Shown: positions 2-27,062 of the stretch, piece by piece
How the letters are laid out: each line of letters begins with the position of its first letter
Numbering within the stretch: position 1 is the stretch's first letter
DNA from: Pelomyxa schiedti
Taxonomy: Eukaryota; Protista; Evosea
Assembly (NCBI GenBank): GCA_020536535.1
Contig: JAHLWZ010000965.1
Location: forward strand, 1 to 37,095
Length of the DNA stretch: 37,095 nucleotides
Direction of reading: 5' to 3'
Notes under the pieces: generated by a model
The model's database searches: none
What the model saw: only the letters and a program-made list of their open reading frames with translations
Told to the model about the DNA's origin: nothing
Program-made: the position numbers and the translations under genes

Positions 2-2247
2 AAGGGACACAAAGTTATTCCCGTGGATGACATTTCTTCACACTGCCGTGACATGAGGGCAGAACTACAAAGTGAATTACGTGATCACGAGAATGCGTGC
101 ACTCAAACACTTTCATTGATATCTGACTCTATTGATTCTTCTCATCAAGTTTGACGCCCTCCAGTGCCTCCCTCCAAGTTTGAGGAATTCCAAAAACTCT
201 CCTCAGGCACAATCAGAACTAGAGACTGAAATCAACAGCTGCTTTGAACACCTCATTTCAGTACTACAAAGCCGGAAAGCATGCTTGATAAAGAATTCCC
301 GTGACCTTCATCAAAGTAGAGGTGATTTACATCAAGCCCTCAAGACCCTTTTTCTCATTTTTTAGCTACTCTGTTACAGCAAAATAAGGAAGATATCCGC
401 GAAATTCTTCAAAGGGTTAATGTATCCACTACTACCTACTCACCATCAACCACGGACTTCGAGATAGGCCTACGATTACAGGATACTCGGGCACTCATAA
501 ACGTCAGTTGCCTTTTTGATATAAATTCATTGGTATTCAGGCCCACAACAGGAACTTGTGCACCGTGAAAAGTACACTACCAGTTTAATTGATGCCAACG
601 CAACCATTAGTGAACTCTGTTCTACTCATCTGGAACAAGAAATAAACAATTTTGGATCTATCAGGTCTGCTGGTAATACTTACTTTGGTAATGGTTCCCA
701 AATAACATCTGCCAGTGCCACGGGCAATTACGCAAGAACCGCGCACAACACCTTCTTCATCTACTAACAATACCGCATGCAGTTTTGATGAAATGGGCCT
801 GTCAGACAATGTTTTAAGGTTACGATATAAGTATAAACCAAGTGTAAAATAATACAGAGGCATCTATGCTTGGGGCTTTGAAACTCCTTCCCTACCACAG
901 CGCAATACAATAACAGGAATGATGAGTGGGCGTGACATTCTCACTCAAGCACAACCTGGCACTGGTAAAACTGCTGCTTTTGTAATCCCATGTCTCCAGA
1001 CCCTTGATGTGAGGAGCAACAAATGTCAAGTACTAGTACTTGTTCCCTCCCATGAATTAGCCTTGCAAGTCCACAGGGTACCCTTGCTTCCTTGTCCTTT
1101 CCTTAACAAATCTAAAAATCAGATCATTATTGGCCTGGGAGCGTACCTGCCTGGACTTAAATGCATGACTTGCATTGGTGCTACTAGTGTCAGGGAAAAC
1201 ATGAAAATGATGGATGACTGTCATATAGTTGTTGGAACCCCTGGTCGAGTCTGTGATATGATAAACAGGAAAGCGCTTCAAACAAACTATGTGAAGCTTT
1301 TTATACTTGATGAAGGTGATATTCTGTTATCCAGGTGCTCTTGACTGTCCTCACTACTCTTGTTCTAAAGTTTTTGTATCCTTTCAAGGTCATTTAAGGA
1401 CCAAATTTATACTGTATTTACCTCACTTCCTACGGATGTCCAAGTGGGGTTATTTTCGTCAGGAATGCCCAAGGAGTGTCTTAGTCTGACAGAAAGGTTT
1501 ATGAGGGAACCCATCCGATTCCTGCTGGAAAAGTCTGAAGTAATACCGAGCAACATAAAGCAGTTCCATATTGAACATGACAATGAGAACCAAAGTAATT
1601 CTTTTGATATATAATACCTAAAGTAAACACATGAAACCCTAAATGGTTCCTTTCGTTTTTTCCCCCCAGAATTTTCTACACTTTGTGACTTGTATGAGGT
1701 GGTTAATATATCTCAATCTGTTATCTTCTGCAACACAAAGAGAAAAGTGGATTGGCTAGTTTCCTCCTTGGGAGAGGCCAACCTAATTGGTATGTCGTTG
1801 AGTACCATCACTATACTAACACTATTGTAGCAACTGGAATACATGGAGATATGGCAATCCAGGAACGCAACGAAGCCGTCGCCTCATTTAGAAGTGGTGC
1901 TACACGAGTTCTCGTCACGACGGACCAGGTTAACATTCCCTATTACAGGAAAGTTTCCAACCTACTGGTAGATTTTGGTTGGCATCGATGTTGCTCAAGT
2001 TTCAGTTGTTTTAAATTACGACCTTCCGAATTGTCTAGAGTCTTATGTTCGGAGGTTGCTTGTTCTCTTATTGCATCCATCACTTAACTTTTCCTATTTC
2101 AGAGTTGGGCGCTGCGGGCGATTCGGCAGAAAAGGAGTGGCTATCACCTTGATTTCATTGGCTGCAGACATGACTCTGTTCCATGAGCTCGAGGAAGAGT
2201 TCGGAACTATACCCCCCATGCCCGCCAACATAGAGGACTTTATATGA
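2..2247 (+). CDS. B-box/coiled-coil (TRIM-like) + eIF4A-like DEAD-box helicase fusion with degenerate motifs; 5' end outside window
   Basis: Frame stays open through GT-AG introns 149-206, 322-365, 503-551, 673-715, 819-857 and five further ones. Translation: [10 protein letters not shown] (B-box tail), helical [24 protein letters not shown]...[11 protein letters not shown], then [24 protein letters not shown] (Q motif), [47 protein letters not shown] and the eIF4A-like C-terminus MPANIEDFI*. Confidence 0.85.
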
Positions 2248-2409
2248 TTCTGAAACCCCTGTCTAGGATAGAAGGGGCACCCTCATCGTCGTGGTGCCGC
2301 ACTCTATCTGAGCAACTGTGAAACCCAATTTGGTTTTCTGCTGTTTTGCATTTTCGCCAAAACAGTTAAACACACGAAAAAAAAAAAAAACCTTGTTGGT
2401 GACAAGCAA

Positions 2410-3023
2410 ATGGCCGCTTCAAGACTAAACAATGAACTGCGCGAACTCGCCACCAACCCACCAGAGAACGTAAACGCCAACCCCCTCGATGACGACATTT
2501 ATCACTGGCAAGGAACAATTATGGTTCGTAACATTCACCCCCGTATCTGTTTTTTTTTTTATTTTGATTGTACTCTCCAGGGACCTGACAACACACCTTA
2601 TGCCGAGGGCGTTTTCTTCTTAGATATTTTGGTTCCAACTGACTACCCAGTAAATCCACCCAAAGTCAGCTTCACAACTAAAATCTTCCACCCGGTAAGT
2701 TTTCCGCTTGATTTTACTTAACTTCACCTCATCCGGATCACATTCAACCACACCCAACTTCCCGTACTATCAACACTGACACTCTACACCCAAAAAAGGA
2801 TGTTCGAGGAGATGGCTCCATTTGCCTCACCCTATTGAAGCCAGGACACTGGCAACCAACCATCACAATTGCACAAATCCTGGTCTCCATTCTGGCTCTT
2901 CTTCACGAGCCTGAGGGTTTGGCTGCCCCATTCAACCCTGAGGCCGCCGCCCTCTATCAAAGAGACAGGGCCGCATTTGACCGCACTGCTGCTCAATGGA
3001 CCAAAGACCATGCTTCTGTTTGA
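2410..3023 (+). CDS. Ubiquitin-conjugating enzyme E2, Ubc4/UBE2D-like
   Basis: Exons 2410-2523, 2581-2694 and 2799-3023. Motifs: [60 protein letters not shown] (catalytic Cys present), WQPTITIAQILVSI. Confidence 0.93.
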
Positions 3024-3164
3024 GCAGTCACAAACAAATGAGACAACCATTTTATTTGAAAGGGAAAAAAAAAAATGTGTTTCTATTCAACAATTGAATC
3101 CCTTCAGACATCACGTCAACGATTCATTGAGTGAGCTTATTATGTTGGTGTATTGGTTTGTTGA

Positions 3165-4545
3165 TCACTCGTCTTCGAGGGAGAAGGACAAATGGGCAGG
3201 GGAAGTGAGTGTCTTTTTGGGTTGGGCTGCAGCTGTTTCCGGTTCTACAACTACGGGAGCCTCTTCAATCGTGGTTGCATCAGAGCTCATAAGATTCACA
3301 CCGAATTTAGTTTGCACGTAGTCAAGTAGTCTTGTTGACTGAGATTTCCTGCAAAGACATTAACCAAAAGGTAAATACTAATTTAAGAGTACAATGCTGG
3401 GTCAGTCATGGAGGGGTCGCCAAGAACTTCAAAGATATCATGCAAACAAACAAGGAGAAAGTTGGAGTCGGTCAAGGGATCCACAAAGAAATCTTTTGGG
3501 GCATGCCCAAGCTGTGCTTGCACAATGCACAAGAAGTTGAAGAAAAATCCAGCGTGCCTGTTGCTGTTTCAGAAACAAAAAAGTTAGAGATACGAGATGT
3601 AGTTCATACACTCCAATTGCTTGCTGACAAGAACACAATAACTTCACTATTTCTTTCCATTGCTCGAGAGCAGAGAACGAGGCTGTATATAAGAATAGAA
3701 CATAAGAAAGCTGCAGCTCGCTAAGTAATTCATCTGAGTTCCCTCCGTATACAGTTGTTATCACCCATTCAAGTCTTCCCGAGCCATCGTGATGGTACTG
3801 AGTTCTCTGAGCACAAGGTTAAGTGGAAAAAATTAGAAGGATTACAAACTTCAGTAGGTGAAAGAGTAGCAAGGAAAGGCTTGGGTGGGGACAGATTGCT
3901 GAACTTGGGAATACGGGGAGCATCCTCAAAGAACGGTATAACTTGTTGACTCTGGGAAGTGCTGGAACGCGTTTCATCTCCGCCAGAACATATCTTGGAC
4001 ATTGGAGGTATTGCACATCTTTCTAGCGTCAGGGAAAAGCTTTTACAACTTGTACTATACCTATGTAAGGTTGCCTCCGAAATTCGATCAGATACTTCGT
4101 TCCAGCTGGACATGTGTTGTATGGGATAAGCACCGAGCCTCTGATCAAGCTCGGGTGTATTGACCAAATCTTGCATTCTTCGGATTTCGTCCTCGTCTCT
4201 GACTATCAAACAAAAAAGGAGAGAAGATGAAGCTCTAAGAAAAAGCGAGAATTGTTAGGACTGCACAAAGTTGGCTTATGGCACACCGAATTTGAAGTCT
4301 TCCTCCTTGTCGTCCCAATCGACCACAACAACTCGTTTCTCGCTGCTGAACTTCACAAAAAATGCCAACCCCATTCCGGCTCCACCACCTGACGAGGGCA
4401 TACTGTAGTGCACTAAATGGAGCCCCATTGGGACCAGTTTGGTTCCCATAAACCGCGGCGCCACCGTTCTGTAGCTCACTTCGTCCACACCAAATTCCAG
4501 CTGCCGCGTGACATTACGGCATACTACGTACCCGTAAGGTTGCAT
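3165..4545 (-). CDS. AAR2: AAR2, U5 snRNP assembly factor
   Basis: Motifs: EFGVDEVSY...FMGTKLVPMGLHLVHYS, LDQRLGAYP, LLSELQLSYVLFL, ALEQWKEIVKLLCSC, QLGHAPKDFFVDPLTDSNFL. Five GT-AG introns; TGA at 3165-3167. Confidence 0.9.
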
Positions 4546-10980: not shown

Positions 10981-11896
10981 CTCTCGTAAAACAATCGAAT
11001 GCAAACAGCAAAATGATAAAATTATGAAAATGCCTTCAACTGCAGGCTTTTATATTCGAGAAAACATTTGCAACTGAACCGTTTAAAGCACTCCCCTGCT
11101 CATTGTAAAGAGGAAATTTCTCTCTAAACTCAAATCCTAAAGATCTAAATCTCAGGGAGCCAAAAAAAAAAAAAAAAGAAAAGAATACAAACCTTCTCTG
11201 CCAACCAACGTAAGTCCCACAATAACAACTTCTGGACCTGATAGTCTCAGTAACCTTTCACAAACAAACAAAAGCCTCACCTCTCTAAGATCTTAGATGG
11301 GTTATTTTCCATAAGCCAGCATTTCCAATAAACGTGATTGACGTATATACACGCAAATAGATTTCAAAAAGCAGCATTACAAATAGACGTGAATACGCAA
11401 ATTACATAGTTTTCCAAAGATCGTAAATAAAAACGACCATACACTCGAGTAAGGCAACATTGCTGTGAGTTAAATACAATCACAGAGCAGAGACTTGCCT
11501 TGCCTCTATTTGCTGAGATCCGGAGATGATATCCCAAGCCAACAAACATTCAACCGGGTTGTGTTTTTTTGCTTTCCTGCATCCTTCCAACTCTTCAGTA
11601 ATCCCCATCACCTCCCACAAGAATCCACTTCCCACACACACGACCGTTCTGCATCTTTTTCCTTTACCACGACACTCCACATTGATTGGAGTCGTACGGG
11701 CCAGGAAAATCAAAATAATGATTGATTGCTCTTATGTTTATTGGGTTTTTTTTGTGTGGCCTGCCTATCTTTTCTGGTTACAATGATCACCACCCTCAAA
11801 TCCCTTCAAAAAACTGGGAAGCCGTTCTGATGGCAAGTGAAGGTTGCTAGGAAGATAGAACAACAGAAAAAATTTTCTCACTTAGTTTCTTTTGTG

Positions 11897-13433
11897 TTAC
11901 TCTCCACAGAGTCCAGTGAGGGGATTTGATTGAGTTGTTGATGGTGTAGCTTGTGCTGTGGTTTTGGCTGTCCGTGCGGCCTGTATCTTTGTGAGCCAGT
12001 TGGCTGATCGATTCTTTTGTGATGTGAGTACACTTTCATTGACCACATTTTGTTGAGCCACCAGGTTCTTGGTACCCAAGTTACACGGCAGAAGCAAGTC
12101 CAACGTTTCACTTGAATTTGTTGCTGGAGAAGATGATGGTGCGGGGGTGGATGATGCCGATTTGGATGAATCAGGTTTGCCGGGGATGATTGTTGAAGTA
12201 TTCGGGGTGGTACTTTGTGCTGCTTCATCGTACTGTTCCAGAATCTGCCGGCGGAGAACTCTGCTTGGTGGGGGCTTGCATCCTGGTGGAAGTTGAGTGC
12301 AACTCGGTGGTTGTGCCTTGACTGCTGCCATTTTGGATGCAAGGATGTGTGTTGAAACAGGGCCAAAAATGGCATCCTCGTGCGAAAGTTCGGCAGCGGT
12401 CAGAGTGGGAATACCGTGAGTACCGTGTAACTTGGAAGGGAGTTCAAAGTCATCTTCGGCATCTATCAGTGATTAATGAGAACCCTTGTGGAGAGAAGAA
12501 TGAACAATACCAAGTAGAGTGTCATTTACATGTGGTCTTTCATCTAATGGTGCATTGGAATTCAAGTCGAACCTGCGAGTAAAGGAAAGTATAAGGGATT
12601 AAAAAAAAAGTAATTGCATAATGCCTTTCCCAACCACGATCACTACTTTTTACGTTGGGAGTAGTTGCATCCTCAGATGTTTCTTTAGAGGTATTGTTCC
12701 GTGGACCATCTGCAACTTTCCCCTCACCAAGAGTACTTGCCTTTTGTTGGTGTAAAAGTGTGCTGTCAAAGGCAGCTTTTTTTTTTTTTGTTAGAGGGAA
12801 AACCCGATTGAAAGTACTGCAAGCTCTACTCTACATACAAACTTTACATAGCTGCAGTTGCATTTTTTCTTTTACCCTCTGGGCTGGAGTCTGAAAAGTA
12901 TGAGTGAATGTGGTGAAATGGTAGGAAAACAACAACCATATTATCATACCCAGGGATCCCATCACGTAGTTTTCTTGATGTGAAATTAGTAGGAGGCCCA
13001 CCGGAATGCTGTTTGGTTCAAACCTTGTGTGTGGTGCCTTTGTTCCACTACAATCAGACTCAGAATCAGAATCTTGTCTTCCAGTCATATCCCTGACCAC
13101 CTTTTGGTCACCACAAATAGGAGCCAAATAAAAACAAAAAAAAAAAAAAAAAAAAAAAAACAAATATAACAAGCCAGCCAAGCACCTTCCAAATTCGTCC
13201 ACGAGCACCTCCTTGTTCCCATCATCGCCTTTCGGGTTCCTGCGGCCGCCACGCCCGGCCCCTACCGCCGCCTCGTTGTGCCTCGTACTCTTCCTCCCGC
13301 CGCCCCCGGTGTTCGCTGTGCCCCTGCCCGACGCTTGCGGCTCCTTCCGTGCAACCCCTTCGCCTTGCGCCACCCTGGCCCTCTTGGGTCGTGGCGGCAC
13401 TGCCCCTCCTTGTCCCCTGTCTCGAGTCGCCAT
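11897..13433 (-). CDS. Conserved hypothetical protein (basic N-terminus; TPAQRVKEKMQLQL / GWERFD..APLD / HEDAIFG motifs)
   Basis: The multi-exon chain includes a GC-AG intron at 12573-12624. The motif series resembles, from memory, an uncharacterised eukaryotic (plant-annotated) family. The N-terminus has NLS-like PRPKRAR. Confidence 0.65.
12573..12624 (-). other. GC-AG intron
   Basis: Minus strand reads TGG GAA AG|GCATTA...CTCGCAG|G TTC GAC, restoring GWERFD. The segment contains no GT. Confidence 0.75.
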
Positions 13434-13560
13434 TTTGTTTCTTCTAAAGGGATCTGATGGGAGGGTATGGGTATTACCCACAAAACACTTTTATGTAATT
13501 GCTTTTTTATTCAGATTGGCCAAATACAACAGACAACTGTCAAAGAATCAGACGCAGCTA

Positions 13561-15698
13561 TCAGTGGAAACTGCGCATAGTATCCGCACGGGATGAGGTT
13601 GTGTAGGAAGTAAGGCTGTCATAGCCGTACGAGGTGACACGCTGCCTGTAGTGCCCGGTGCCACACGTAGTCATGGTGCTGTGCCCATATGAGGTATAGG
13701 AACGCCTGTCTTGTACTCCAGCGAGGCATGTCTCCAGGTCCTTCACTAGACTGAGGCAGAATGCATCCTCCCCTTATGTTATGGTTGGTTGATTTGGTGT
13801 GTGGAGGTAGTTTTTAGAATGTGTGAAGTTACTTGAAGCTGACTCCTTAATTCTGCTTATGGCATCTGATAGAGTTTTCCTAGATTGGTCCAGTTGATTG
13901 TCGTTGGCTAGTCTGGTGGCAACTTCCATAGCTTCAGCTGCCAGCAACCTCTGAAGTGGTGTAAACGAAAGAAAGAACGCGAGTTTGCTACATTTCTCTG
14001 AATGTCAAGCTTGAGGTTGATTTTTTGGTCTAGCGGAGCCTCGACAGGTCGGCGTACACTACATACACACACTTTGGTTTCTTGTCTTCCTTGCACCACA
14101 TCTCGATATGTCACGTTTATGGACAAAAGCTGATGTTGTTCAGTAGGCTCCAGCATCGCCGGGATTTTCAACTGTGTGATGATTGTCAAAAAAGGAAGTT
14201 ATTTGGTAGAGCGTACTGAAACAAGGATATCTCTGTGCTCCTCGGCTTGTATATCCGCAAGAGCAAGTTCGTAGCTGGTATTTGGTGTTATTTCTCTAAC
14301 CTCGAAGCCTGTAAGAATCTTCTGAATTTGAGATCCATTGACTAAAGCCTGGTCAGAAATAAAAGGGGTTCAGTTTAGCATACTTGCATCAAATCTCAGA
14401 GTCACATTTTGTGCACAAACACTGAGAAGGCCGCCAAGACAATTTGCAAACGATTCTACAATGCGCGGTTCTGCCTCAACATAATAGAAAACACCGTTCC
14501 CAGCTTCGGCAATCTACACGAGGAGAACGATGAGATGCATTAACTTGGAATTGGGAAAACCTTCTTCAGCAAGGTAGGGTCGTGGTCTGAACCAAACCCA
14601 AAAGTATTCACAGTGCAGGGAAGTATTGTTTTAACAACCTAAGAAACAAGTCAGCGAGGAATACTAATTAGTTGCTAACTACTTTCTCTCTGTTGGATCG
14701 GTTGTAGTTCGGATTGTGCATGAAATTGATAATGTCACTCTCAGATGTTAGCCCTACATTGGCAATTCCATCAGTGAAAACAATGATACTCGCCCTGTAG
14801 AATGGTATTGATATGTGATGCAGTTCGAAATGAGTAGCATACACTTCACTGCGCTTATTGGTACGCATTTGGTTCAACCCAGCCCCAATTCCCCCAGCAA
14901 GATTGGTTGAGCTACCAGCAACTAACCTACCAATAGCCCTTTTTGCGTTCTCTACACCTGTCTTGATTGTGAGATTTACCAATTAAGCCAAGCACCTGAA
15001 CTGACCTTCAGTATCAAGGGAGGTAAGAGGGAGTTCGACAGCTATGTTGTCATCAAAAGAAACAATGGATATCCTATTTGTGGAACTAGATGAGATTTGA
15101 TTGATGTGTCGTGTCCTTGTACCTATCAGTGGGGAGTAAGTGTTCAACAACATGAACCATTGTCTTCTTCACAAGTTCCAGTTTTCCTCCTTCCATACTA
15201 AACAAATAAACGAAGTATTAGCAACCAATGCACAAAAGGAAACGTGATTAAAACTCGCCTCCCACTACGATCAATCACAGCAACAAGGTCAATCGGTGCA
15301 CGAACAGTCGGCTGTACAAGAGGTTAAATTTTGCAAGAACGCATGTAATAAGGATACAAAGTAAGAATGACAAAAAGGGGTCAAAGAGAGAGGTTGCTAA
15401 CCTTCCACTGAGGAGCAACCAAAGAAGCCATCACAACCAATTCACGCTCAGTTGGGTAAGTCACGGCCTGCAGCTCAGGCGTCGACTCCAAACTCAAACC
15501 ACTGTCCACAGGCGCCGCAGTGCTCGTTGTGCTCGTAGTCGAAGTAGTTGCAGTCGTAGTCGCAGTTGCAGATGACGTAGGCGACGCGGAACTGGGCGCA
15601 GACACGGCTGTGGTTTGTGGTGGCTGTTGCACTACAGTAGTCTCGTCCATCGTGAGATCTATCACCGGTATACCGCCAGGCGCTGTTTCGGATGACAT
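13561..15698 (-). CDS. von Willebrand factor A domain protein (APIDLVAVIDRSGSM type)
   Basis: MIDAS motif VIDRSGSMEGGKL, RISIVSFDD, STNLAGGI, IIVFTDGIANVG, NTFGFGSDHD, IAEAGNGVFYYVE, FANCLGGLLSV, LADIQAEEHRDILV, and a C-terminal helical region. Confidence 0.9.
15198..15258 (-). other. GC-AG intron splitting the vWA MIDAS DxSxS codons
   Basis: Minus strand reads GAT CGT AGT GGG AG|GCGAGT...TTTAG|T ATG GAA, giving DRSGSME. Only the GC donor restores the motif. Confidence 0.85.
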
Positions 15699-15906
15699 GT
15701 TGCTACTATGAGGGACGGTTTTTTTTTAATTTTTTTTTACTTGGTTTGAAATTTTTCACTTTGGGATGACAAATCGAGATCTTGAAACTAAAATGGCAAC
15801 CAAGTTGCTTGGTTGGGGTAATTTGTTGGTAGGTAGTGGACAAAACCAGTCTCTGAGTCTGTCACTTGTGTCGTTGTCTGCGTTGTAGTTGTGATTCTTG
15901 AGCGAG

Positions 15907-18900
15907 TCAAGAGTGGGAGTCCTTAAGTAGAGAGGCTAACATTCTTGTGGTCTCTGTGATGTAGTTGGGTCTCTCTACATAATACGCCTGGAGTGATACT
16001 TTGTTGCCAAGTGTTGGTTGTGCAGACTGGAATTTATGTTGTGAGTGAGTATTGATGTCGGTGGAGTGGATAAGAACCTGATGTGGAACCATTGCCCAGG
16101 CGTATACTATGAATAGGGAGTTACTACACAGGTCCACAGTGTCGAGATAGTCCAGGGTTCTATTGTATATTTCGTCATAGGCGTCTGCTGGATTATACAC
16201 TTGGGCTTTGTTCACGATATGACTATGTGACCCTGTGTGCCGTTTGTGAGAGTTCCATGTGTTGGTTTGTTTTGTCGCACTTACACTCAAATGACCCTTT
16301 GGAGTGGCAGTATACAAGTATTTCCTCCTGTACTCTTCCACTCCTTTCAGTTATTTGAAGAAACGTCTAAAACGTACTCCTTTGATATTGAGAGTATAGT
16401 CAATGTTGACTCTTCCTCACAATGGAGGTATGCCGTGTTAGACCCATCATCTAATATACAGAGACTTTTCCAATGGGTAGTTCCACCGCTTTGTAGTTTA
16501 GAAGTGTGGCAAGCAAGGGTATAATTACAGCAATAAAACCACCTGTAAGATACAGTGACTCGTATTGGCGTGACTGTAACAGAGTTGATTCTAACGGTTA
16601 CTTGTGTGAACTTGGTGCTTAAGCTTTTACTTAGCTCAAGTAATGAAACAGTGGGTAAATTCTCTAAGAGCCTGAATGGAACATCACGCAACACGTAACT
16701 ATGTGGTGACATACTGTTTATCCATTTCATTGGGAACAACCTCACAGGGTGTTTGTCCTCTGAGAATGGGTGTGAATCGCGTTCTGTCAAGGCCCTCATA
16801 AGACAAAAAACTTTCCTATTGGTAGAACAAAAACACATAAAACTGCAAGAATAAAACTGGTGGAAAGACGAAAGAGCAAGTGGGATGGAAGAGTAATTAC
16901 ATCATTAAAAAACATCTTGATCAAACTGGCTTCAATATGTTTTGTGCACTTGAAGAATGTCACAATAGATCCGGGAACCTAATGAGGCACTTGATTTGTA
17001 TGCACAATCAAAAGAGAAAAATTACCAGTCCGGTGGGGTGTAAAGATAGAGGGATCTTCATTGAGATGAGGTGAGGCTGTGAAACATCTTGGATTGTCAA
17101 CAGAGAATTCTGATTATTCTCTGAGAATTGTGTTGAAGACGGGACATGGAAGACTTACTGAAGGGAAGAGGGCTTTGGATATGAGGGTTCCTCTGAAGGA
17201 GAACAGTTCAGTATCAGGGCCGGCCATACTGAGAAGATCACGAACGCTGCGGTTTGAGTGTTTAGATCTTTCTTCCTCCCTCTTTGTTGTGGTTACTTAT
17301 GAATAGTAGTGTGCTGGGCCGCCAGTGATGCCTCCTCCATACGTGTCAGTGACACTTTGTGCGAGGTTTCGTGTATGCACAAGTGCGGCGTCATGTCTTC
17401 AGCGGATACCAAGGAAGCAGCTTCAATGCTGGCTGCATTAGGTCAACGGGAAGAAAAAAAACTTACAGAGAAAGGTTTACATGGCGGGATTATAGTAATA
17501 ATCGAGGAAGAAGATTTGTTCACATCACGGGCACCCTTGATGGAATAATAATTGTTTGGCTTGATGAATACATAATGGCCAGTATCCCTGCCAGCAAAAT
17601 TTAGAGTAACCTGGGGGAAAAAAATTAGGATTTTTGACATTTATCTCCTACTAGGTAATCACACCGATTCGTTGTGTTTTTCGTGTTGTCCTTGGTTGTC
17701 AACTTGTATGAGGTGACCCAATACAGAAAATCCATTGTGTGAAAGGCGTTTGTTCTTCGCCTAAAGAATGTGTGTTACCGATAGGATGTTACCCAAAAGA
17801 ACTCTTTACCAAAAGAATGAAAGAAGAAGAGGCGGGAACTTCATCATCCTTGTGAGTGAACGGAAGGTCGACTGATGTGTGACTAAAGTGCAGGCTATCC
17901 GCCATCATAAATTGAATGATGTGACGAGGATTTGTTTCACAGATGAAATTAAATCTATCGCTTTGCGTTAAAGCCTGTATTGAGACTCAGCTTACTTATT
18001 AACAATGCACAATTTCCCCAGATGATGTGGAAGAGCGTCCGGTACAATGGCAGGAAGACGGTTGACATTATCAAATAGAGAAAGGGATTTTAAATCGGCA
18101 CTCATGACCAAAAAGCCGGCCGTCCACACTTTCTGTTCCAAATCCTCATCAGTTATCACTGGCACAATTATTAAGGAAAAAAAAAAAAAGAATAGCTGAG
18201 AACCTTGTGATAGGGACTCGGCCAAAATATTAGTTTCTACAGTTTTCATCAATTCACAGAGTGAAACAAATTTTGGTGGTTGTTTACTAAAACCACTGCT
18301 TCTAAAAAAAAATTAAAAATGGGCAAGAAAAAAACAAGCCTTACATTGTTGCACATATGTTTCCTCCCACATGATGACTTATGAACTGGTCGTATACATC
18401 TCTGATGAGCTGCACAGCACCAAGATGTCTGATGATCTCTTGCATGTGTCCCTTCTGTCCCAGTGTCAGAAGAAAAATGTTGAAGTGTAAAACGAACCAT
18501 GTCAGTGGAACCAAGAAGCTCATCTAAAGATAAACTTGGGAATTGAGATGAAAAAGACTGGAATGACTCGTTGAACCTTATTTTACCAACTTGTTATATT
18601 CCACAGAGTTAAGCAGTCACAAAATACCAAATTGAGTCTGGGATGCTCAGGTGTTCCATATAGGGAAAGAGGCGGCTTGAAGAGTGGATGATTGGATAAA
18701 AGCACTCTGTACTGCTGGAAAACCTGCCAACGGAGATATGGCCATAGATGCAAAATCCAAATCCCTGCATTTATTTAAGTGCACTGATATCTCAAGGGAG
18801 CCGTACAATGAATTTGCCATTATAAATGATTGGATGTGTGTTGTGCAAAGTGATCCTGGCACCATTCCTCAATCCCCTTTTTTGTAGGAATCAATCATTG

Positions 18901-20472
18901 CTAGGTGATATCTGGTGAAGTGGTAGGGGCCAAACCTTCCCCTTGTCCAGTGGTGTTGCAAAAAAACTTTGACACTGCCGTCCAACTGAAGTATAAAACC
19001 CTAAGTTTGAACCGTTACCTTGGGGTTAATCCTCAAGATGGCACACGTGCTGACGGCCAGTGATTGTACCACAGTAGCTCACAACTTCAATCTCCCTCTC
19101 TTGCTGCGTTTCCCACATTGAAGTGTACTCATGAAGTTGAGCAAATGACAAACAAGGAGCTGTGTTGGGATCTTCAGGTGATATGGAGGTAGTAAGCATT
19201 GTAGATGATGCCGAGGACGAGGCCATTACAGAGGAATTGGAGATAATTGCCTCACTTTCAGTTGAGTGCATATGTTGTGGCTGGTATACAATAGAAACAT
19301 GTGGTCGAGTAGATGGATGAGCAACAAGAATGAATCTCTCCCTCCTTGTTTTGGGGAACATCTTTGTATTGGCAAGGTTAGAAATTATAACCTCTTGCCC
19401 CTGGCTTAAAAATGGACGCCATCGCACACATTCCTTTTCAACAAAGAGTATAGCCGTAACACAATCACTGTGGGAGGGAGTCACTGAGGGAGGAGAAAAA
19501 GAAAGGAAAGGAAACCCATGTGTCAATTCAATAAAAGAAAACGGGTTGTACGGCGACCGTTGGTTCTTCACTATGATGGCACTGAGAGCACTAATAACCC
19601 CTCTCAATGTAAACAAATTTTTTCTGTTACCTCTAAGTTTATGCACGAAAATAGAGAACACATACATTGTACTTGCAGAACCACTTTGAGTAATATGGTT
19701 GGCGAAGTCTGAAACTGTCATGACATAGTTTCTCTCCAAGAAAGGACTTTCAACCAGGCAACAGGAAATTGGTTTCCAGTCCTCTTATTTGATATAAGAT
19801 TGTGTTAAATTGGGTTCTGCAGCAAAATCAGAAGGAGAAATCTACCAGCTTCAATGTACGGGAGATAGAGGCGAGATTGTGACTTTACAGCAGATATGTT
19901 AAGTCTCCATCTACGCACAAGCAGCATAGTCTCATGCATATGAGGCGGTGGTGGATCTGTAAACAGTATAGGTATACTCCCTGTCTGATCTTCCAGGCAC
20001 AAGTCACACGTGTCATCTGTGTTAAGTTTAAATAAAAATAAATACCTCAAACAAACAAACAAACAAACAAACAAAAAAAAAAAAAAACCAAACCTTGTGC
20101 CACCAATTTTGCTATCAACGGGGAAGTAATGTCACCGACTTTGGACGAGCTCAAAGACGACAGATCTTTTACAGTGGGCACATTCCAATCAGGCACACTT
20201 GCCTCAGTCCCCCAGTCCTCAGGCACGCAGTACTCCAGAATCGCCCCTGCCGCCAATCTGAACGACTCCTCACGGTCCATTGGGAACTTTTCCTTGATCT
20301 TAGCCCACACTTTGGCCCAGGTCTTGTCCGGGGCCCCGGCCCCTCGCGGTCCATTTCTTCTCATCGTGGATCCTGGCGACCGGGGAATCAGTCCTCTTAC
20401 CAAGGCCCACTCGGACATCGACAGCGACGTGTTCGTCCCTACTTCGTCTTTCTGTGGTCTCCCATCGTCCAT
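15907..20472 (-). CDS. CTC1: CTC1-like multi-OB-fold subunit of the CST telomere complex
   Basis: Large multi-exon gene with CTC1-style OB-fold motifs: LCLEDQTGSIPIL..LVRRW..YIEA, LRGVISALSAII, WRPFLSQGQEVIISNL, VVSYCGTITG, and C-terminal CILDDGSNTAYLHC. Exon boundaries are only partly resolved. Confidence 0.7.
20047..20072. repeat. (CAAA)n tetranucleotide microsatellite followed by poly-A, in the first CTC1 intron
   Basis: Directly visible: caaacaaacaaacaaacaaacaaaca followed by an A-run. Confidence 0.85.
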
Positions 20473-20660
20473 TCAGGCAATAGAGTAGGGTATTAGAGAT
20501 TAGAAATCCTCGTCACGCGCCCATCAAATCAAACAAACAAAAACCTGTAGATCCGTTGCTCCAATCACATCCCTTGAGAGGAATTCCCTGCGCCAAACAC
20601 ATCAAAAAATAAAAAAATAAGAAGCTGACAGAGAGGAAGAAGGCGCCGCGCCGTCTGGGT

Positions 20661-22662: not shown

Positions 22663-24501
22663 TCAAGACGATGCAGCGATTTTAAAGTGCGCACAAACGT
22701 CGTGAACAGAACGGGAAGCATATTGGCGTGAATGCTCCCGTGCCTCCCTTGTGTATCTGGCTTTATCTTCCTTGAAGAGTGTTGCTTTGTAGGTATCCAG
22801 GGGGTCATCTCCGTTGGGATGCTCCATGAGTGTTTTTATTGCCGTGAGAATGCGGGAGATGGAAAGTGCTGGGTTCCAGGCTGTGCTGAGTAAGTCAAGG
22901 CAAATTCTGCCATCGGAACTCATGTTGCAGTGATAGATGGGAACAATGAAGCGGACTTGTGGGGGATTGGCTGGGTAGGTTCCGGGGAACTGAATGCTGA
23001 GCATCCACCGGCATCCTTCGTATGGTGTTCCTGTTGGCCCCTCTATTAGCACTTTCCAGAACATACAGTCATCCGCATTAACCCAGGCCCCAGCAACAAT
23101 TGGTGTGGGTTGGCCAAGTAAATCCCGCAGCTCTTTGAAGACACGCTTGGTTGTGGTGGTTGATGCTGCTCGGGCTGCTAAAGCTACTTCATAAGCTCCA
23201 ACCAATACGGGTGCAGTTGCCTGCTTAGGTACCACAGACTTGACATCACTCACCCCCTGTGCCGCTTGGGTATTGAATAGACGCGAAAGGTCACCCTCTG
23301 ATCTGGGTGCCGATGGCGGAATGGCCGGAGGGTCGCGGCATGAAACCCGTAGTAATGCTTCTCGCTCGAAGAGACCTATACCTTGTGCGACTTGTGATAC
23401 TGCTAGACAGAGTCCTCCAGTGGTAGCTGCCATCGCCTGCAGCCAGTTGTTTGCACCAGCTAGGGGAAAAGCATCCAGAACTATATTCCTTTTAACCAAC
23501 TCTGCAGCAACTTCCCAGTGCCTCCTGGAGCTGGCTATTTATTCGTTAGGTCTAGGAAACTACACGAGAAAAAAAAAGGTACATGTATCATCTCCATCAG
23601 TCAAGCAAAATACTCTGGCGAGGCATTCTGGGTGCAGATCAGCAGAGTGTGATTTACGGAAATTTTCAATGTGCATGGCAGCATCGTAGATGGCATCGTA
23701 TAACTTGGTGCTCCCCTGTGATGTATCAAGCTCTCCCAGGGCACCTTCAAACTTGGTGCAATCCCGGGTGAAGGGTGTGAAATCAAGTCTGCTACCAAAA
23801 GTAAGCAACCCAATGGCATGAGGTAACTCTGCGCCAGCGTATTTATCAATCATGGCCTGGAAGAGGATTTTGCCCACCTCGGCCCTTGTTTTTTCTCTAT
23901 CGAAGGAGTCGGATTTCATCGAACCACTCACGTCGAAAGCAATAACATCAATCTGGGTGATTGGCCTCTGATCGCCGTGGTCAGGTTCCGGGCAAGACGA
24001 ACTTGACGAAGTGGATGTGGTGGCCACAGTTGTAGCTTCAGGAGTGGAAGACGAAGTTGAAGTTGTAGCAGGAGCAGTGGTTCCTGGTGGAGAAGTAGTG
24101 GTTCCAGGCATGGAACTAGTCCCTCCAGCAGAGGTACCAGGACCACCTGTTGTTGGGGGTGCAGCAGCAGTTCCAATGAAGCGGCGAAGTGCATCCTTCA
24201 CTCCAACTGGTAAATTCAGCTCTTTCCATCTAAGAATCAATGGCCGGTTAGGGGGAATGTTTGTACTAGTATATTATCCTTATACAATGTCATTGGGTGC
24301 AATTTGGCAGCGAAAATAGGGTTAGTAATTATAAAAAATGAAAGTTGGTAAGTACGAGACATCAGTTGCATCCCTGAGGTCATCAACTGTAGTGAATTCT
24401 TCGTTGTGAAGTACGCCCATCCACTTTTCACGTTTATCCTGAGGCTTGTCGGGAAACACAGCCTCCATAAACGCTTGGTCGATTTGCAATTTCGTTGTCA
24501 T
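22663..24501 (-). CDS. SAM-like + vWA + ubiquitin-conjugating enzyme (E2) fusion protein
   Basis: Exon 1 ...LHNEEFTTVDDLRDATDVS|WKELNLPVGVKDAL (SAM-like); vWA IAFDVSGSM, GLLTFG, TKLYDAI, FCLTDGDD; E2 KRVFKELRDL, WKVLIEGPTGTPYEG, YPANPPQVRF..IYHCNMSSDGRICLDLL..WNPAL, PNGDDPLD. Two GT-AG introns. Confidence 0.92.
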
Positions 24502-24757: not shown

Positions 24758-27062
24758 ATGGAAGCGATAAAAGCGGTTATTGTTGGTGATGGTGCCGTGG
24801 GAAAAAGTTGCCTTTTGATTAGTTATACAACTAATGCTTTTCCAAGTACGTCTTCCATTAGGTTTTTGTATTTTTTTTTTAATCAAACTATCACAGGTGA
24901 ATATGTTCCGACTGTATTCGAGTGTGCAGCATACCTTTTTATACTTTTCCTGCTCACTTTTTCCCCAGCAACTACTCTGCAAATATTATGGTCGATGGGA
25001 AACCGATCAGCCTTGGATTGTGGGACACAGCTGGTCAAGAGGTAGATTGATAGAATGTTTGTAGTGTATTATGACACAAAAAAGGATTATGATAGGCTGA
25101 GGCCATTGTCTTATCCTCAGACTGATGTATTTATTATTTGCTACAGCTGTATCAGCCCCACAAGCTTGGAGAACGTAAAATCCAAGTGGATCGAAGAAAT
25201 TAGACATCACTGCCCTGCTGTTCCAGTTCTCCTCTCCTGCAATAAATGTGACCTGAGGAAAGATGCCAAATGGTCATCCAAACAAGTACCAAAAGCACAA
25301 GGTGATGCCATAGCCAAGGAAATCGGTGCTGTGGGGCATTTTGAAACATCCGCCCTCACCACAGTCGGTTGCAAAGACCTTTTTGATGCTGCAGTCAGGG
25401 CGGTTATATGTGCTCCCAAATCCGCCAAGAAGGCAAAAGCCAGTGGAGGTGTATTTGGCTGGTTCGGAGGAAGTTCTTCATCCTCTTCATCTGAACCTTC
25501 GACACCAGCACTTCCTCCACCTCCAGTGCTGCCAAAAGGCATTCCTGCACCCTGGATCAATGTAGCTCCTTCCACATACTCAGACGATATGCGCCGCTTG
25601 CTGAATCACCATCGAGGGTCCACAGATATTACATTCATTCTTAGAAGTGAGCCGCCCAACACACAACCAGCTCTGCTTGCCCATAGCGTCGTGTTGATAT
25701 CGGCATCAACTTTGTGGAAACGATTGTTAATCGAATCTCCACATCTATGGCGAGAGCGAAAGCCTGTAGCTCTGGTGCCAGCTGCCGTTGAACCAAGCTC
25801 TACTGACCCAGCTCTTCCTGACAAACCATTGCCTGAATTCCTTGATCCAGTTACTGAAGAGTTGATGCAAGACCCGGTTATAGCCGCCGACGGGCATACT
25901 TATGAAAGGAGTGATTTACTTGTCTGGCTGAGCAGGCATGACACCAGCCCCGTTACTGGAGCTCCACTTGCAAACAAGGAGCTGGAGCCCAATGAAAAAC
26001 TCCATGCACGTATTGAGGAGTTCTGTTTGAGGACTGGATGGAAGGCCAAGGGCTCCATGCTAGGTGGGCCAGCAATTCCTGCGTCTCCTTTTGGATGCTA
26101 TCTCATTGAAGCAATCCAATTCGCAAATCAGGACCGTCCTGAGAAAGGCTTGGTGGTTGTAATGGAAAATAGTGTTACCCGCCCAGCAATGGAGCGCCTG
26201 ATCGAGTTCTGGTACACCGGATTGCCAGGGATACCTACTAGTGCTGCTGCTGACCCGGTAGTCCAGCAACTCACAACCGCTGCCACTGCCTTTGGCAGCG
26301 AACACCTTGGCACAATATGTAAAAACATAGAGGAGGGGAGAGACATGCTCAACCCATCAATCGGAACATGGCTAAACGACGAGACCGGGAAGGAAGCAAA
26401 GGCACTCTTCCTGGGTCACGAAACCATGGCCGATGGAGCTTTCCTCGTTCAGGGAAAAACAGTACCGGTGCACAAATCATTCCTGAAGGCCCGGTGCAGT
26501 GTTTTGGCTTCACTACTTAAAGGTGATAGCCCTACAGAAATCGAAAACGTTTCAGCACAAAGTTTCCTGGCAGTGCTCGAATTTATCTACACAGATCACG
26601 CTCCAATAGACACTGAATGTGACACAGACAGATGCGAGGTTCTACATCTCGCTCATAATCTAAAACTCCCCAGACTAATTACACTTGCGGAGCTGTATTC
26701 CTCCAAGGCAGTTGAAGTAGCCACACGGGAAAGTGTCAGTCAATGCAAAATGCCTATTTGCGCCTTGCTCGAAGCGGCACAAGATGCAGACGCCCAGCAA
26801 CTTGTTAAATTCATGCAACACTTCTGCTGCACAAACTACGGGCCCATTTCACAGCGGTCTGACTTTGCCAAACTGTCATCAGCGAACAAGCACTACATTG
26901 ACGAAAACCAGTAAGACCAGTCCCTATTTGTTTCTCTGTCCTCCTTCTAATACAAAAAACAACTACAGGTGGCCTCCCAAGAGTTATCTCAAAGAAGTTG
27001 AAGACTACGAGAAACTCGTGGCTGGTGCTGGTGGAAAGAAAGATAATTGTAGTGTCATGTAA
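24758..27062 (+). CDS. RhoBTB/RacA-type GTPase with a U-box inserted in the split BTB1 domain and a C-terminal CAAX box
   Basis: Rac-like G domain ([43 protein letters not shown]), then a Pro-rich linker. BTB1 N-half [17 protein letters not shown]; U-box [40 protein letters not shown]; BTB1 C-half LIEFWYTG; BTB2 [30 protein letters not shown]; C-terminal WPPKSY and ...KKDNCSVM*. Four GT-AG introns. Confidence 0.93.

Follow-up and report, generated by a model that had tools for sequence, protein, structure and literature searches.

RhoBTB proteins act as tumour suppressors and are products of neurodevelopmental disease genes, and it is not known what the split in their first BTB domain (BTB1) is for (PMC4931677). 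A locus of the anaerobic amoeba Pelomyxa schiedti raises the question of what such a split can hold. The window analyzed here is a stretch of 37,095 nucleotides (assembly GCA_020536535.1, contig JAHLWZ010000965.1, positions 1 to 37,095), and the gene of interest, whose coding region spans 24758-27062 on the plus strand, was first noticed in a reading of the nucleotide sequence (the original prediction), which proposed that it encodes a RhoBTB protein with a complete U-box inserted in BTB1. Is the U-box an integral part of the protein, and would it serve as a ubiquitin ligase (E3) module by itself or side by side with Cullin-3 (Cul3)? The analysis confirmed the presence of a U-box within a RacA/RhoBTB GTPase. 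Judging from sequence and predicted structure, the product of the RacA-U-box gene is probably a ubiquitin ligase linked to a GTPase in one chain.

The RacA-U-box Gene and Its Predicted Product

The coding region consists of five exons (24758-24845, 24897-24921, 24969-25041, 25085-26910 and 26969-27062, stop codon included) separated by four introns of 51, 47, 43 and 58 nt, all of them GT-AG. The translation of the joined exons is exactly the 701-residue protein designated here P0001, which carries only the NCBI name 'rac gtpase [Pelomyxa schiedti]'. Database searches were carried out with the large exon (25085-26910) or with P0001, and the exons were joined only for this equality check; the large exon matched P0001 at 100% identity in the protein database search. 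The domain order of P0001 is Rac-like GTPase, proline-rich linker, BTB1 N-half, U-box, BTB1 C-half, second BTB (BTB2), 3-box/BACK-like tail and CAAX box. Pfam analysis of the product of exon 4 identified Ras (E 1e-20), U-box (PF04564, E 2.2e-18) and one BTB (PF00651, E 1e-17). Of the expected series Ras, BTB, U-box, BTB, the first BTB was therefore not scored: the BTB1 halves of P0001 gave no Pfam match even at an E value of 1. In relatives, three BTB stretches were scored. The Ras and BTB matches, the family alignment and the fold identify the product as a RacA-type GTPase, in agreement with the RhoBTB-type identity that had been proposed.

Translation of the window located the three elements where they had been predicted. 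The segment 25619-25729 reads STDITF...LWKRLL, the BTB1 N-half; the whole U-box is found within 25826-26026, and the segment 26189-26221 ends in EFWYTG, the motif of the BTB1 C-half. All three are encoded in the exon 25085-26910. The bounds deduced from structure differ slightly from the earlier ones (BTB1 N-half, 25577-25753; U-box, 25820-26038; BTB1 C-half, 26105-26332) and are those used below.

Integrity of the U-box

The U-box (residues 308-380, 25820-26038) scored 66.6 bits against PF04564 when the exon product was searched, the cut-off being 21.4, and 67.1 bits on residues 200-701 of P0001. A phmmer search against solved U-boxes produced a match at E 6e-13 to the rice OsCIE1 U-box solved with OsUBC8 (7xed), with which it shares 45% identity. 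An AlphaFold2 model of residues 203-701 was built with 59 homologues (mean predicted local distance difference test value, pLDDT, 91.3; predicted template modelling score, pTM, 0.81). Its U-box, model residues 106-178, superposed on that of E4B (3l1x) with Z 13.0 and a root-mean-square deviation (rmsd) of 1.4 Å, and on that of CHIP in complex with UbcH5b (9ye9) with Z 12.6 and rmsd 1.1 Å. It also matched Ufd2, the Z values ranging from 12 to 13 and the rmsd from 1.1 to 1.4 Å, and several of these references were solved with ubiquitin-conjugating enzymes (E2s). Pfam, phmmer and structural matches of this strength exceed chance by a wide margin.

The signature positions P(I/V)T, M.DPV, DGHTYER, W, SPxT and PN are kept across the 18 members of the family that have a U-box, and the two loops of the Pelomyxa domain read DPVT and SPVT. 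In CHIP and E4B, the hydrophobic residue that follows Pro in loop 1 and the proline of loop 2 are E2 contacts. No Cys/His zinc-ligand pattern was seen in the P0001 U-box sequence, and the modelled domain is a RING-like fold without zinc ligands. The gene was also compared with its paralogue on another contig of the same genome, C1006. At a dS of about 0.5, the ratio of nonsynonymous to synonymous substitution rates (dN/dS) was 0.17 for the whole exon and 0.08 for the U-box; it was 0.33 in linker 1, which precedes the U-box, and 0.06 in the BTB1 C-half. The U-box is under strong purifying selection. Pfam, alignment and model agree on a complete canonical U-box in a split BTB1, with purifying selection as a further indication, and the original prediction was right on this point.

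An arrangement of this kind could also be produced by a mis-assembled or mis-predicted chimera, or the U-box could lie in a segment that is spliced out. The genome is indeed a single-cell assembly, and the model of the Mastigamoeba orthologue, P0006, contains an obvious internal duplication. However, the large exon is one unbroken frame of 1826 nt, the design is common to three loci of the Pelomyxa genome, and the same domain order appears in independent transcriptome assemblies of other genera: the U-box is in frame in the transcriptome-assembled orthologues of Mastigella eilhardi, Pellita catalonica and Luapelamoeba hula. The low dN/dS of the U-box also speaks against an artefact, an explanation that is already close to refuted and to which we assign a very small probability.

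Predicted Fold of the Split BTB1 and Position of the U-box

The BTB1 N-half (residues 227-285, 25577-25753) aligns with the BTB1 of RacA-like proteins and consists of one helix, two strands and further helices, the last of which ends in LWKRLL. The C-half (residues 403-478, 26105-26332) includes EFWYTG and is made of two strands (model residues 201-206 and 216-220) and three helices (226-276); a family profile matched this post-insert segment to the BTBs of myoneurin and BCL6 over residues 59-121, that is, to the C-terminal half of a BTB. Two linkers connect the halves to the U-box. Linker 1 (residues 286-307, 25754-25819; pLDDT 69-82) is proline-rich and the least conserved part of the gene. 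Linker 2 (residues 381-402, 26039-26104; pLDDT 57 at model residues 181-190) extends to a conserved SPFGC strand, which the alignment also reveals in RacA-like proteins. The original prediction had called for a structure prediction to see whether BTB1 folds around the insert. In the model it does: residues 25-83 of the N-half and 201-276 of the C-half (model numbering) come together as one BTB, and the U-box sits in a surface loop.

P0001 was aligned with relatives that have no U-box, among them dictyostelid proteins, animal proteins named 'racA-like' by NCBI and the environmental sequences P0012 and P0013. In these relatives, 33-57 residues separate the ...FRRLF helix from the strand before ...EF(W/L)YTG, and they form a short helix and a beta-hairpin. 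At the same place P0001 has 139 residues, the U-box on its two linkers. The U-box is thus located in the alpha3/beta4 loop of BTB1 (KLHL3 nomenclature), after the second helix pair, the loop that also holds the insert of RacA. The bipartite BTB1 of human RhoBTB proteins is taken from the literature (PMC4931677), and the insertion site of P0001 was aligned only against RacA-like proteins.

A connecting helix (26342-26410, model residues 280-302) with an invariant 11-residue motif leads from BTB1 to BTB2 (residues 513-612, 26435-26734), the domain recognized by Pfam. The helical tail that follows (residues 613-690, 26735-27026) is encoded across intron 4 (26911-26968) and resembles a 3-box or BACK region. 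The Pfam BACK match of P0001 was weak (E 0.07) and reached 1e-5 in relatives, and the BTB and 3-box of SPOP superposed on model residues 280-469 with Z 16.7. When taken together, BTB1 and BTB2 of the model matched the tethered Miz1-BCL6 POZ heterodimer (4u2m) with Z 16.5 over 227 of 240 residues, within the range 19-401 and spanning the U-box. P0043, the homologue from Dictyostelium, was modelled as well (pLDDT 93.7, pTM 0.88), and this model matched 4u2m with Z 17.1 over residues 19-300, the same arrangement with a span about 100 residues shorter. Since the match is the same without a U-box in P0043, the internal BTB1-BTB2 pseudo-dimer is predicted to be the base design of RacA-type proteins, and the U-box would be an addition to a surface loop. 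The pseudo-dimer models are mdc989a7e8966 and me3d55f312d20, with 4u2m matches at Z 16.5-17.1. No solved RhoBTB structure was found by sequence, nor was a paper found on RHOBTB2, CUL3 and cryo-EM, and the modelled pseudo-dimer could serve as a structural hypothesis for the whole RhoBTB family.

Distribution and Origin of the U-box Subfamily

Three RacA-U-box copies are present in the Pelomyxa genome, the one in the window, the C1006 paralogue, which is 87-88% identical to it, and one on contig C1639. This third gene is on the minus strand of C1639 (1-4129), at about 1330-4110, and is closest to the Mastigella proteins P0010 and P0090; several short introns fall within its U-box, and the end of the contig falls in the GTPase domain. 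The other U-box members, to a total of 18, are from Mastigamoeba balamuthi, Mastigella eilhardi (two genes), Pellita, Luapelamoeba, Anaeramoeba ignava and about nine environmental sequences. By these sequences, the subfamily spans Archamoebae, Discosea and Anaeramoeba and is not unique to Pelomyxa.

A search with the BTB region of P0013, which has no U-box, found dictyostelid proteins at E values of about 1e-103 to 1e-105, as well as proteins of molluscs, sea urchin, sponges and many protists. The animal matches include those with the NCBI name 'racA-like', and all were placed on one tree. The U-box family is, on sequence grounds, part of the RacA-like branch of RhoBTB. The maximum-likelihood tree, which is unrooted and was built without the insert columns, has the 18 U-box rows on one side of a branch (SH-aLRT 84), so that one change is needed; P0012, which has no U-box, is their neighbour. 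The tree fits a single capture of the U-box, with moderate support. RacA-like proteins with the GTPase-BTB-BTB arrangement were seen in sponges (P0060, P0066, P0067, P0079 and P0080; Ephydatia, Halichondria) and in molluscs and sea urchin (P0054-P0059). According to a 2020 review, no RhoBTB members were found in sponges (PMC7600811).

Other members of the family carry a RING instead. A classical C3HC4 RING occupies the same BTB1 loop in P0084 and in P0087 of Lithocolla globosa, and in a clade that includes P0074 of Vannella robusta (P0069, P0074 and P0083) a RING and a TRAF-like finger are found between the first two BTB1 strands. All these proteins fall outside the U-box clade on the tree. 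They share with P0001 the family and an E2-recruiting domain nested in BTB1, and differ in that theirs is a zinc RING. These relatives bear on a further explanation, in which the U-box of P0001 is a structural or protein-binding module and not a ligase, for instance one that binds a chaperone or an E2 but does not catalyse, or one that regulates the contact between the GTPase and BTB1. The conservation of all canonical U-box positions and a fold within 1.1-1.4 Å of active U-boxes argue against it, as does the RING at the same place in relatives, E2 recruitment being the only thing that RING and U-box share. We regard a non-catalytic module as improbable.

The Cul3-Docking Motif

If the U-box recruits an E2, the next question is whether the protein would also use Cul3, as proposed in the original prediction. 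That proposal had as its premise that BTB1 binds Cul3. This is the case for human RhoBTB proteins (PMC4931677); in the family studied here, however, BTB2 is the domain with the canonical Cul3 signature, AMFxGxF-x-E, and an SPOP-like 3-box follows it. Canonical adaptors make their main contact to Cul3 through a helix and a phi-x-E motif in the alpha3/beta4 loop, in KLHL3 A77, M78 and M83-S-E85 (PMC3616122). The spacing of the BTB2 motif of the family is that of KLHL3 A77/M78...M83-S-E85, and in a profile search its F-x-E aligned with M-E-E of SPOP. In Pelomyxa, the phi-x-E loop of BTB2 is deleted and an 11-residue stretch occupies the site, so the feature that marks a canonical adaptor of Cul3-based ubiquitin ligases (CRL3) is missing.

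F-x-E or F-x-D is present in 34 of the 36 relatives that have no E3 domain. The motif is absent from 15 of the 23 rows with a U-box or a RING, as compared with 2 of the 36 that have neither. All archamoebal copies (Pelomyxa, Mastigamoeba and Mastigella), Anaeramoeba and all RING rows lack it, and the discosean U-box members (Pellita and Luapelamoeba) and some of the environmental ones keep it. A naive Fisher test of the association gives p 1e-6, a value that is untrustworthy, with only 1-2 phylogenetically independent contrasts. The association is only suggestive of a loss of F-x-E that goes with the presence of an E3 domain.

The deletion of the BTB2 Cul3 motif makes a self-sufficient U-box ligase likelier for Pelomyxa than a dual one that combines Cul3 and the U-box. 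In the dual version, Cul3-Rbx1 would be engaged through the BTB region and a second E2 through the U-box, possibly with one arm priming and the other extending the chain. Several observations are compatible with it: human RhoBTB1, RhoBTB2 and RhoBTB3 bind Cul3 through their interrupted BTB1 (PMC4931677), BTB1 has an intact fold in the model and the protein retains a 3-box/BACK-like tail, F-x-E and U-box coexist in the discosean and several environmental members, and the Pelomyxa genome has at least seven cullin loci, with genes split into many short exons. On the other hand, the BTB2 F-x-E loop is lost in the Pelomyxa, Mastigamoeba, Mastigella and Anaeramoeba copies, and the U-box takes up the BTB1 loop through which SPOP and KLHL3 chiefly contact Cul3 (PMC3616122). 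For these reasons a dual ligase seems unlikely to us, although less so than a U-box without catalytic function.

The interpretation that we favour, as the likelier one but by no means as certain, is that P0001 is a self-sufficient, GTPase-linked U-box ligase on a RacA-type RhoBTB, Cul3-independent in Pelomyxa; it is based on sequence comparisons and the structural model. Three points weigh against it. Human RhoBTB binds Cul3 via BTB1 and not via BTB2, despite the insert (PMC4931677), so that Cul3 could still be bound after loss of the BTB2 motif. The link between E3 domain and motif loss comes down to few independent events, with 2 and 6 changes on the tree and 1-2 independent contrasts. Finally, the position of the U-box relative to the BTB core is that of the model only, in which the linkers have pLDDT values of 57-69.

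Proposed Mechanism

In a self-sufficient ligase, the U-box would recruit the charged E2 directly, and P0001 would be a single-chain ubiquitin ligase anchored to the membrane by farnesylation. The BTB pseudo-dimer and the tail could provide the scaffold and the substrate site; the place and time of ligase action would depend on the Rac domain and on the lipid anchor. In human RhoBTB, BTB1 binds Cul3 and also the GTPase domain of the same protein, which results in an autoinhibited state (PMC4931677). By analogy with this autoinhibitory contact, the putative Pelomyxa ligase may have its activity or its targeting linked to whether its own Rac domain has GTP bound. In the relevant passages of a survey of amoebozoan Rho proteins, the GTP-bound form of Dictyostelium RacA is described as binding PAK and WASP family effectors (PMC8305917).

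The U-box would provide the E2-recruiting function that Cul3-Rbx1 has in ordinary BTB ligases, and in some lineages both may be in use. Each BTB of a canonical dimer offers its alpha3/beta4 loop to one Cul3. As the BTB1 loop is this canonical Cul3-facing loop, the U-box would be located where the Cul3-Rbx1 arm would dock on BTB1. The Pelomyxa protein is probably Cul3-independent, because F-x-E of BTB2 is deleted and the family has no other canonical motif for docking Cul3. A broader scenario can be put forward tentatively, as conceivable but short of probable: RacA-type GTPases captured E2-recruiting domains in BTB1 more than once, a U-box once at the Cul3-facing loop and RINGs there and at a second loop, after which F-x-E decayed in most such lineages and the Cul3-Rbx1 arm was replaced, giving rise to a single-chain, prenylated ligase switched by Rac-GTP.

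Comparison with Known Systems

The closest known proteins are Dictyostelium discoideum RacA and the racA-like proteins of molluscs, echinoderms and sponges, which have the Rac-like GTPase, the PPxxPxxxxAPW linker and the BTB1 insert in the same loop as P0001, as well as the connecting helix with its 11-residue motif, BTB2, the helical tail and the predicted pseudo-dimer. Outside Dictyostelium, RacA-like proteins mostly end in CxxM, as P0001 does. Unlike the Pelomyxa proteins, they keep the BTB2 F-x-E. Likeness also extends to human RhoBTB1, RhoBTB2 and RhoBTB3, Cul3 adaptors that are autoinhibited through the contact between GTPase and BTB1 (PMC4931677). Their GTPase domain is divergent, with G12 replaced and extra insertions, whereas that of P0001 is a near-canonical Rac. 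We know of no E3 domain in the insert of a human RhoBTB.

With CHIP/STUB1, Ufd2/E4B and plant PUBs such as OsPUB12/CIE1, P0001 shares the U-box fold and the signature residues. The U-boxes of CHIP, Ufd2/E4B and PUB proteins are terminal and paired with TPR, ARM or Ufd2-core regions, whereas that of P0001 is nested in a loop of a GTPase-BTB protein. The CRL3 adaptors SPOP, KLHL3 and KEAP1 resemble it in their BTB and 3-box fold, and the AMFxGxF-x-E signature is found in relatives of P0001. Unlike these homodimeric adaptors, P0001 has two BTBs in one chain, and the U-box sits in the phi-x-E loop of its BTB1.

No paper in the searched literature connects a U-box, or any of these taxa, to RhoBTB or RacA. 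A U-box is not mentioned in the RacA and RhoBTB passages of the amoebozoan Rho survey (PMC8305917), in which Archamoebae are sampled by Entamoeba. The original prediction knew of no description of this architecture, and no paper with one was found. P0001 is not unique: the U-box proteins form a conserved subfamily with RING-bearing cousins and appear in databases under generic names. Since public databases already list these proteins together with precomputed Pfam matches, the architecture amounts to a hitherto undescribed variant within a known family and not to a new kind of system.

The family illustrates a use of the split BTB1, which is a permissive site where whole E3 domains became nested in a protist family. 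Its members would offer natural 'Cul3-free' and 'Cul3-plus-U-box' versions for comparison. If active, these proteins would be a compact case of a small-GTPase switch with a direct connection to ubiquitin transfer at the membrane, and they could help in understanding the regulation of RhoBTB and serve as a template for design.

GTPase Domain, Linker and Predicted Lipid Anchor

The GTPase domain (residues 1-178) is spliced over exons 1-4 (24758-25432), and the Pfam Ras match is to its exon-4 part. Rac1 chains match it at E values near 1e-36, and these alignments are gapped at two places within the insert region. All GTPase motifs are kept, including G1 (GDGAVGKS), the switch I threonine, the catalytic Gln in DTAGQE, NKCD and SAL, and G1 to G5 are invariant across the family alignment. 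Compared with Rac1, the Rho insert lacks about 7 residues. By its sequence, the domain is a near-canonical Rac in which only the Rho insert is shortened. The Rho insert helix (25220-25300, residues about 118-135) is shortened in the Pelomyxa and Mastigella copies and has its full length outside Archamoebae. In P0006 of Mastigamoeba balamuthi (m51a1_g9329), about 95 GTPase residues are repeated, with NYSANVMVDG... occurring twice, probably as an artefact of prediction or assembly.

The Ser/Pro-rich linker between GTPase and BTB1 (25433-25576) ends in the family-invariant PPxLPKGxPAPW; P206, P209, P212, P218 and W219 are invariant, the linker is ordered in the model (pLDDT 87-96), and its 16-residue proline-rich stretch has prolines that do not vary across the family. 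At the other end of the protein, the CAAX box CSVM (27048-27059), as read from the sequence, is a prenylation signal, and most full-length family members have a CxxM C-terminus. A CAAX box in which X is Met predicts farnesylation.

The Neighbouring vWA-E2 Gene

A gene for a protein with a von Willebrand factor A (vWA) domain and an E2 domain is located at 22663-24240 on the minus strand, head-to-head with the RacA-U-box gene and with about 520 bp between the starts. Conserved synteny of the two genes was considered and rejected: no vWA or E2 match was found beside the C1006 paralogue in positions 11000-20500, of which about 5.6 kb is upstream of the first exon. Prediction of a complex between the U-box (P0001 residues 300-392) and the UBC domain of the neighbour (22666-23163, minus strand) gave scores of 0.25 and 0.02 with the mark at 0.34, a result that counts neither for nor against an interaction. 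The product of the neighbouring gene has the vWA domain first (PF13519, E 1e-6) and then the UBC E2 core (PF00179, E 5e-38), in which the catalytic Cys is kept and HCN is found in place of HPN.

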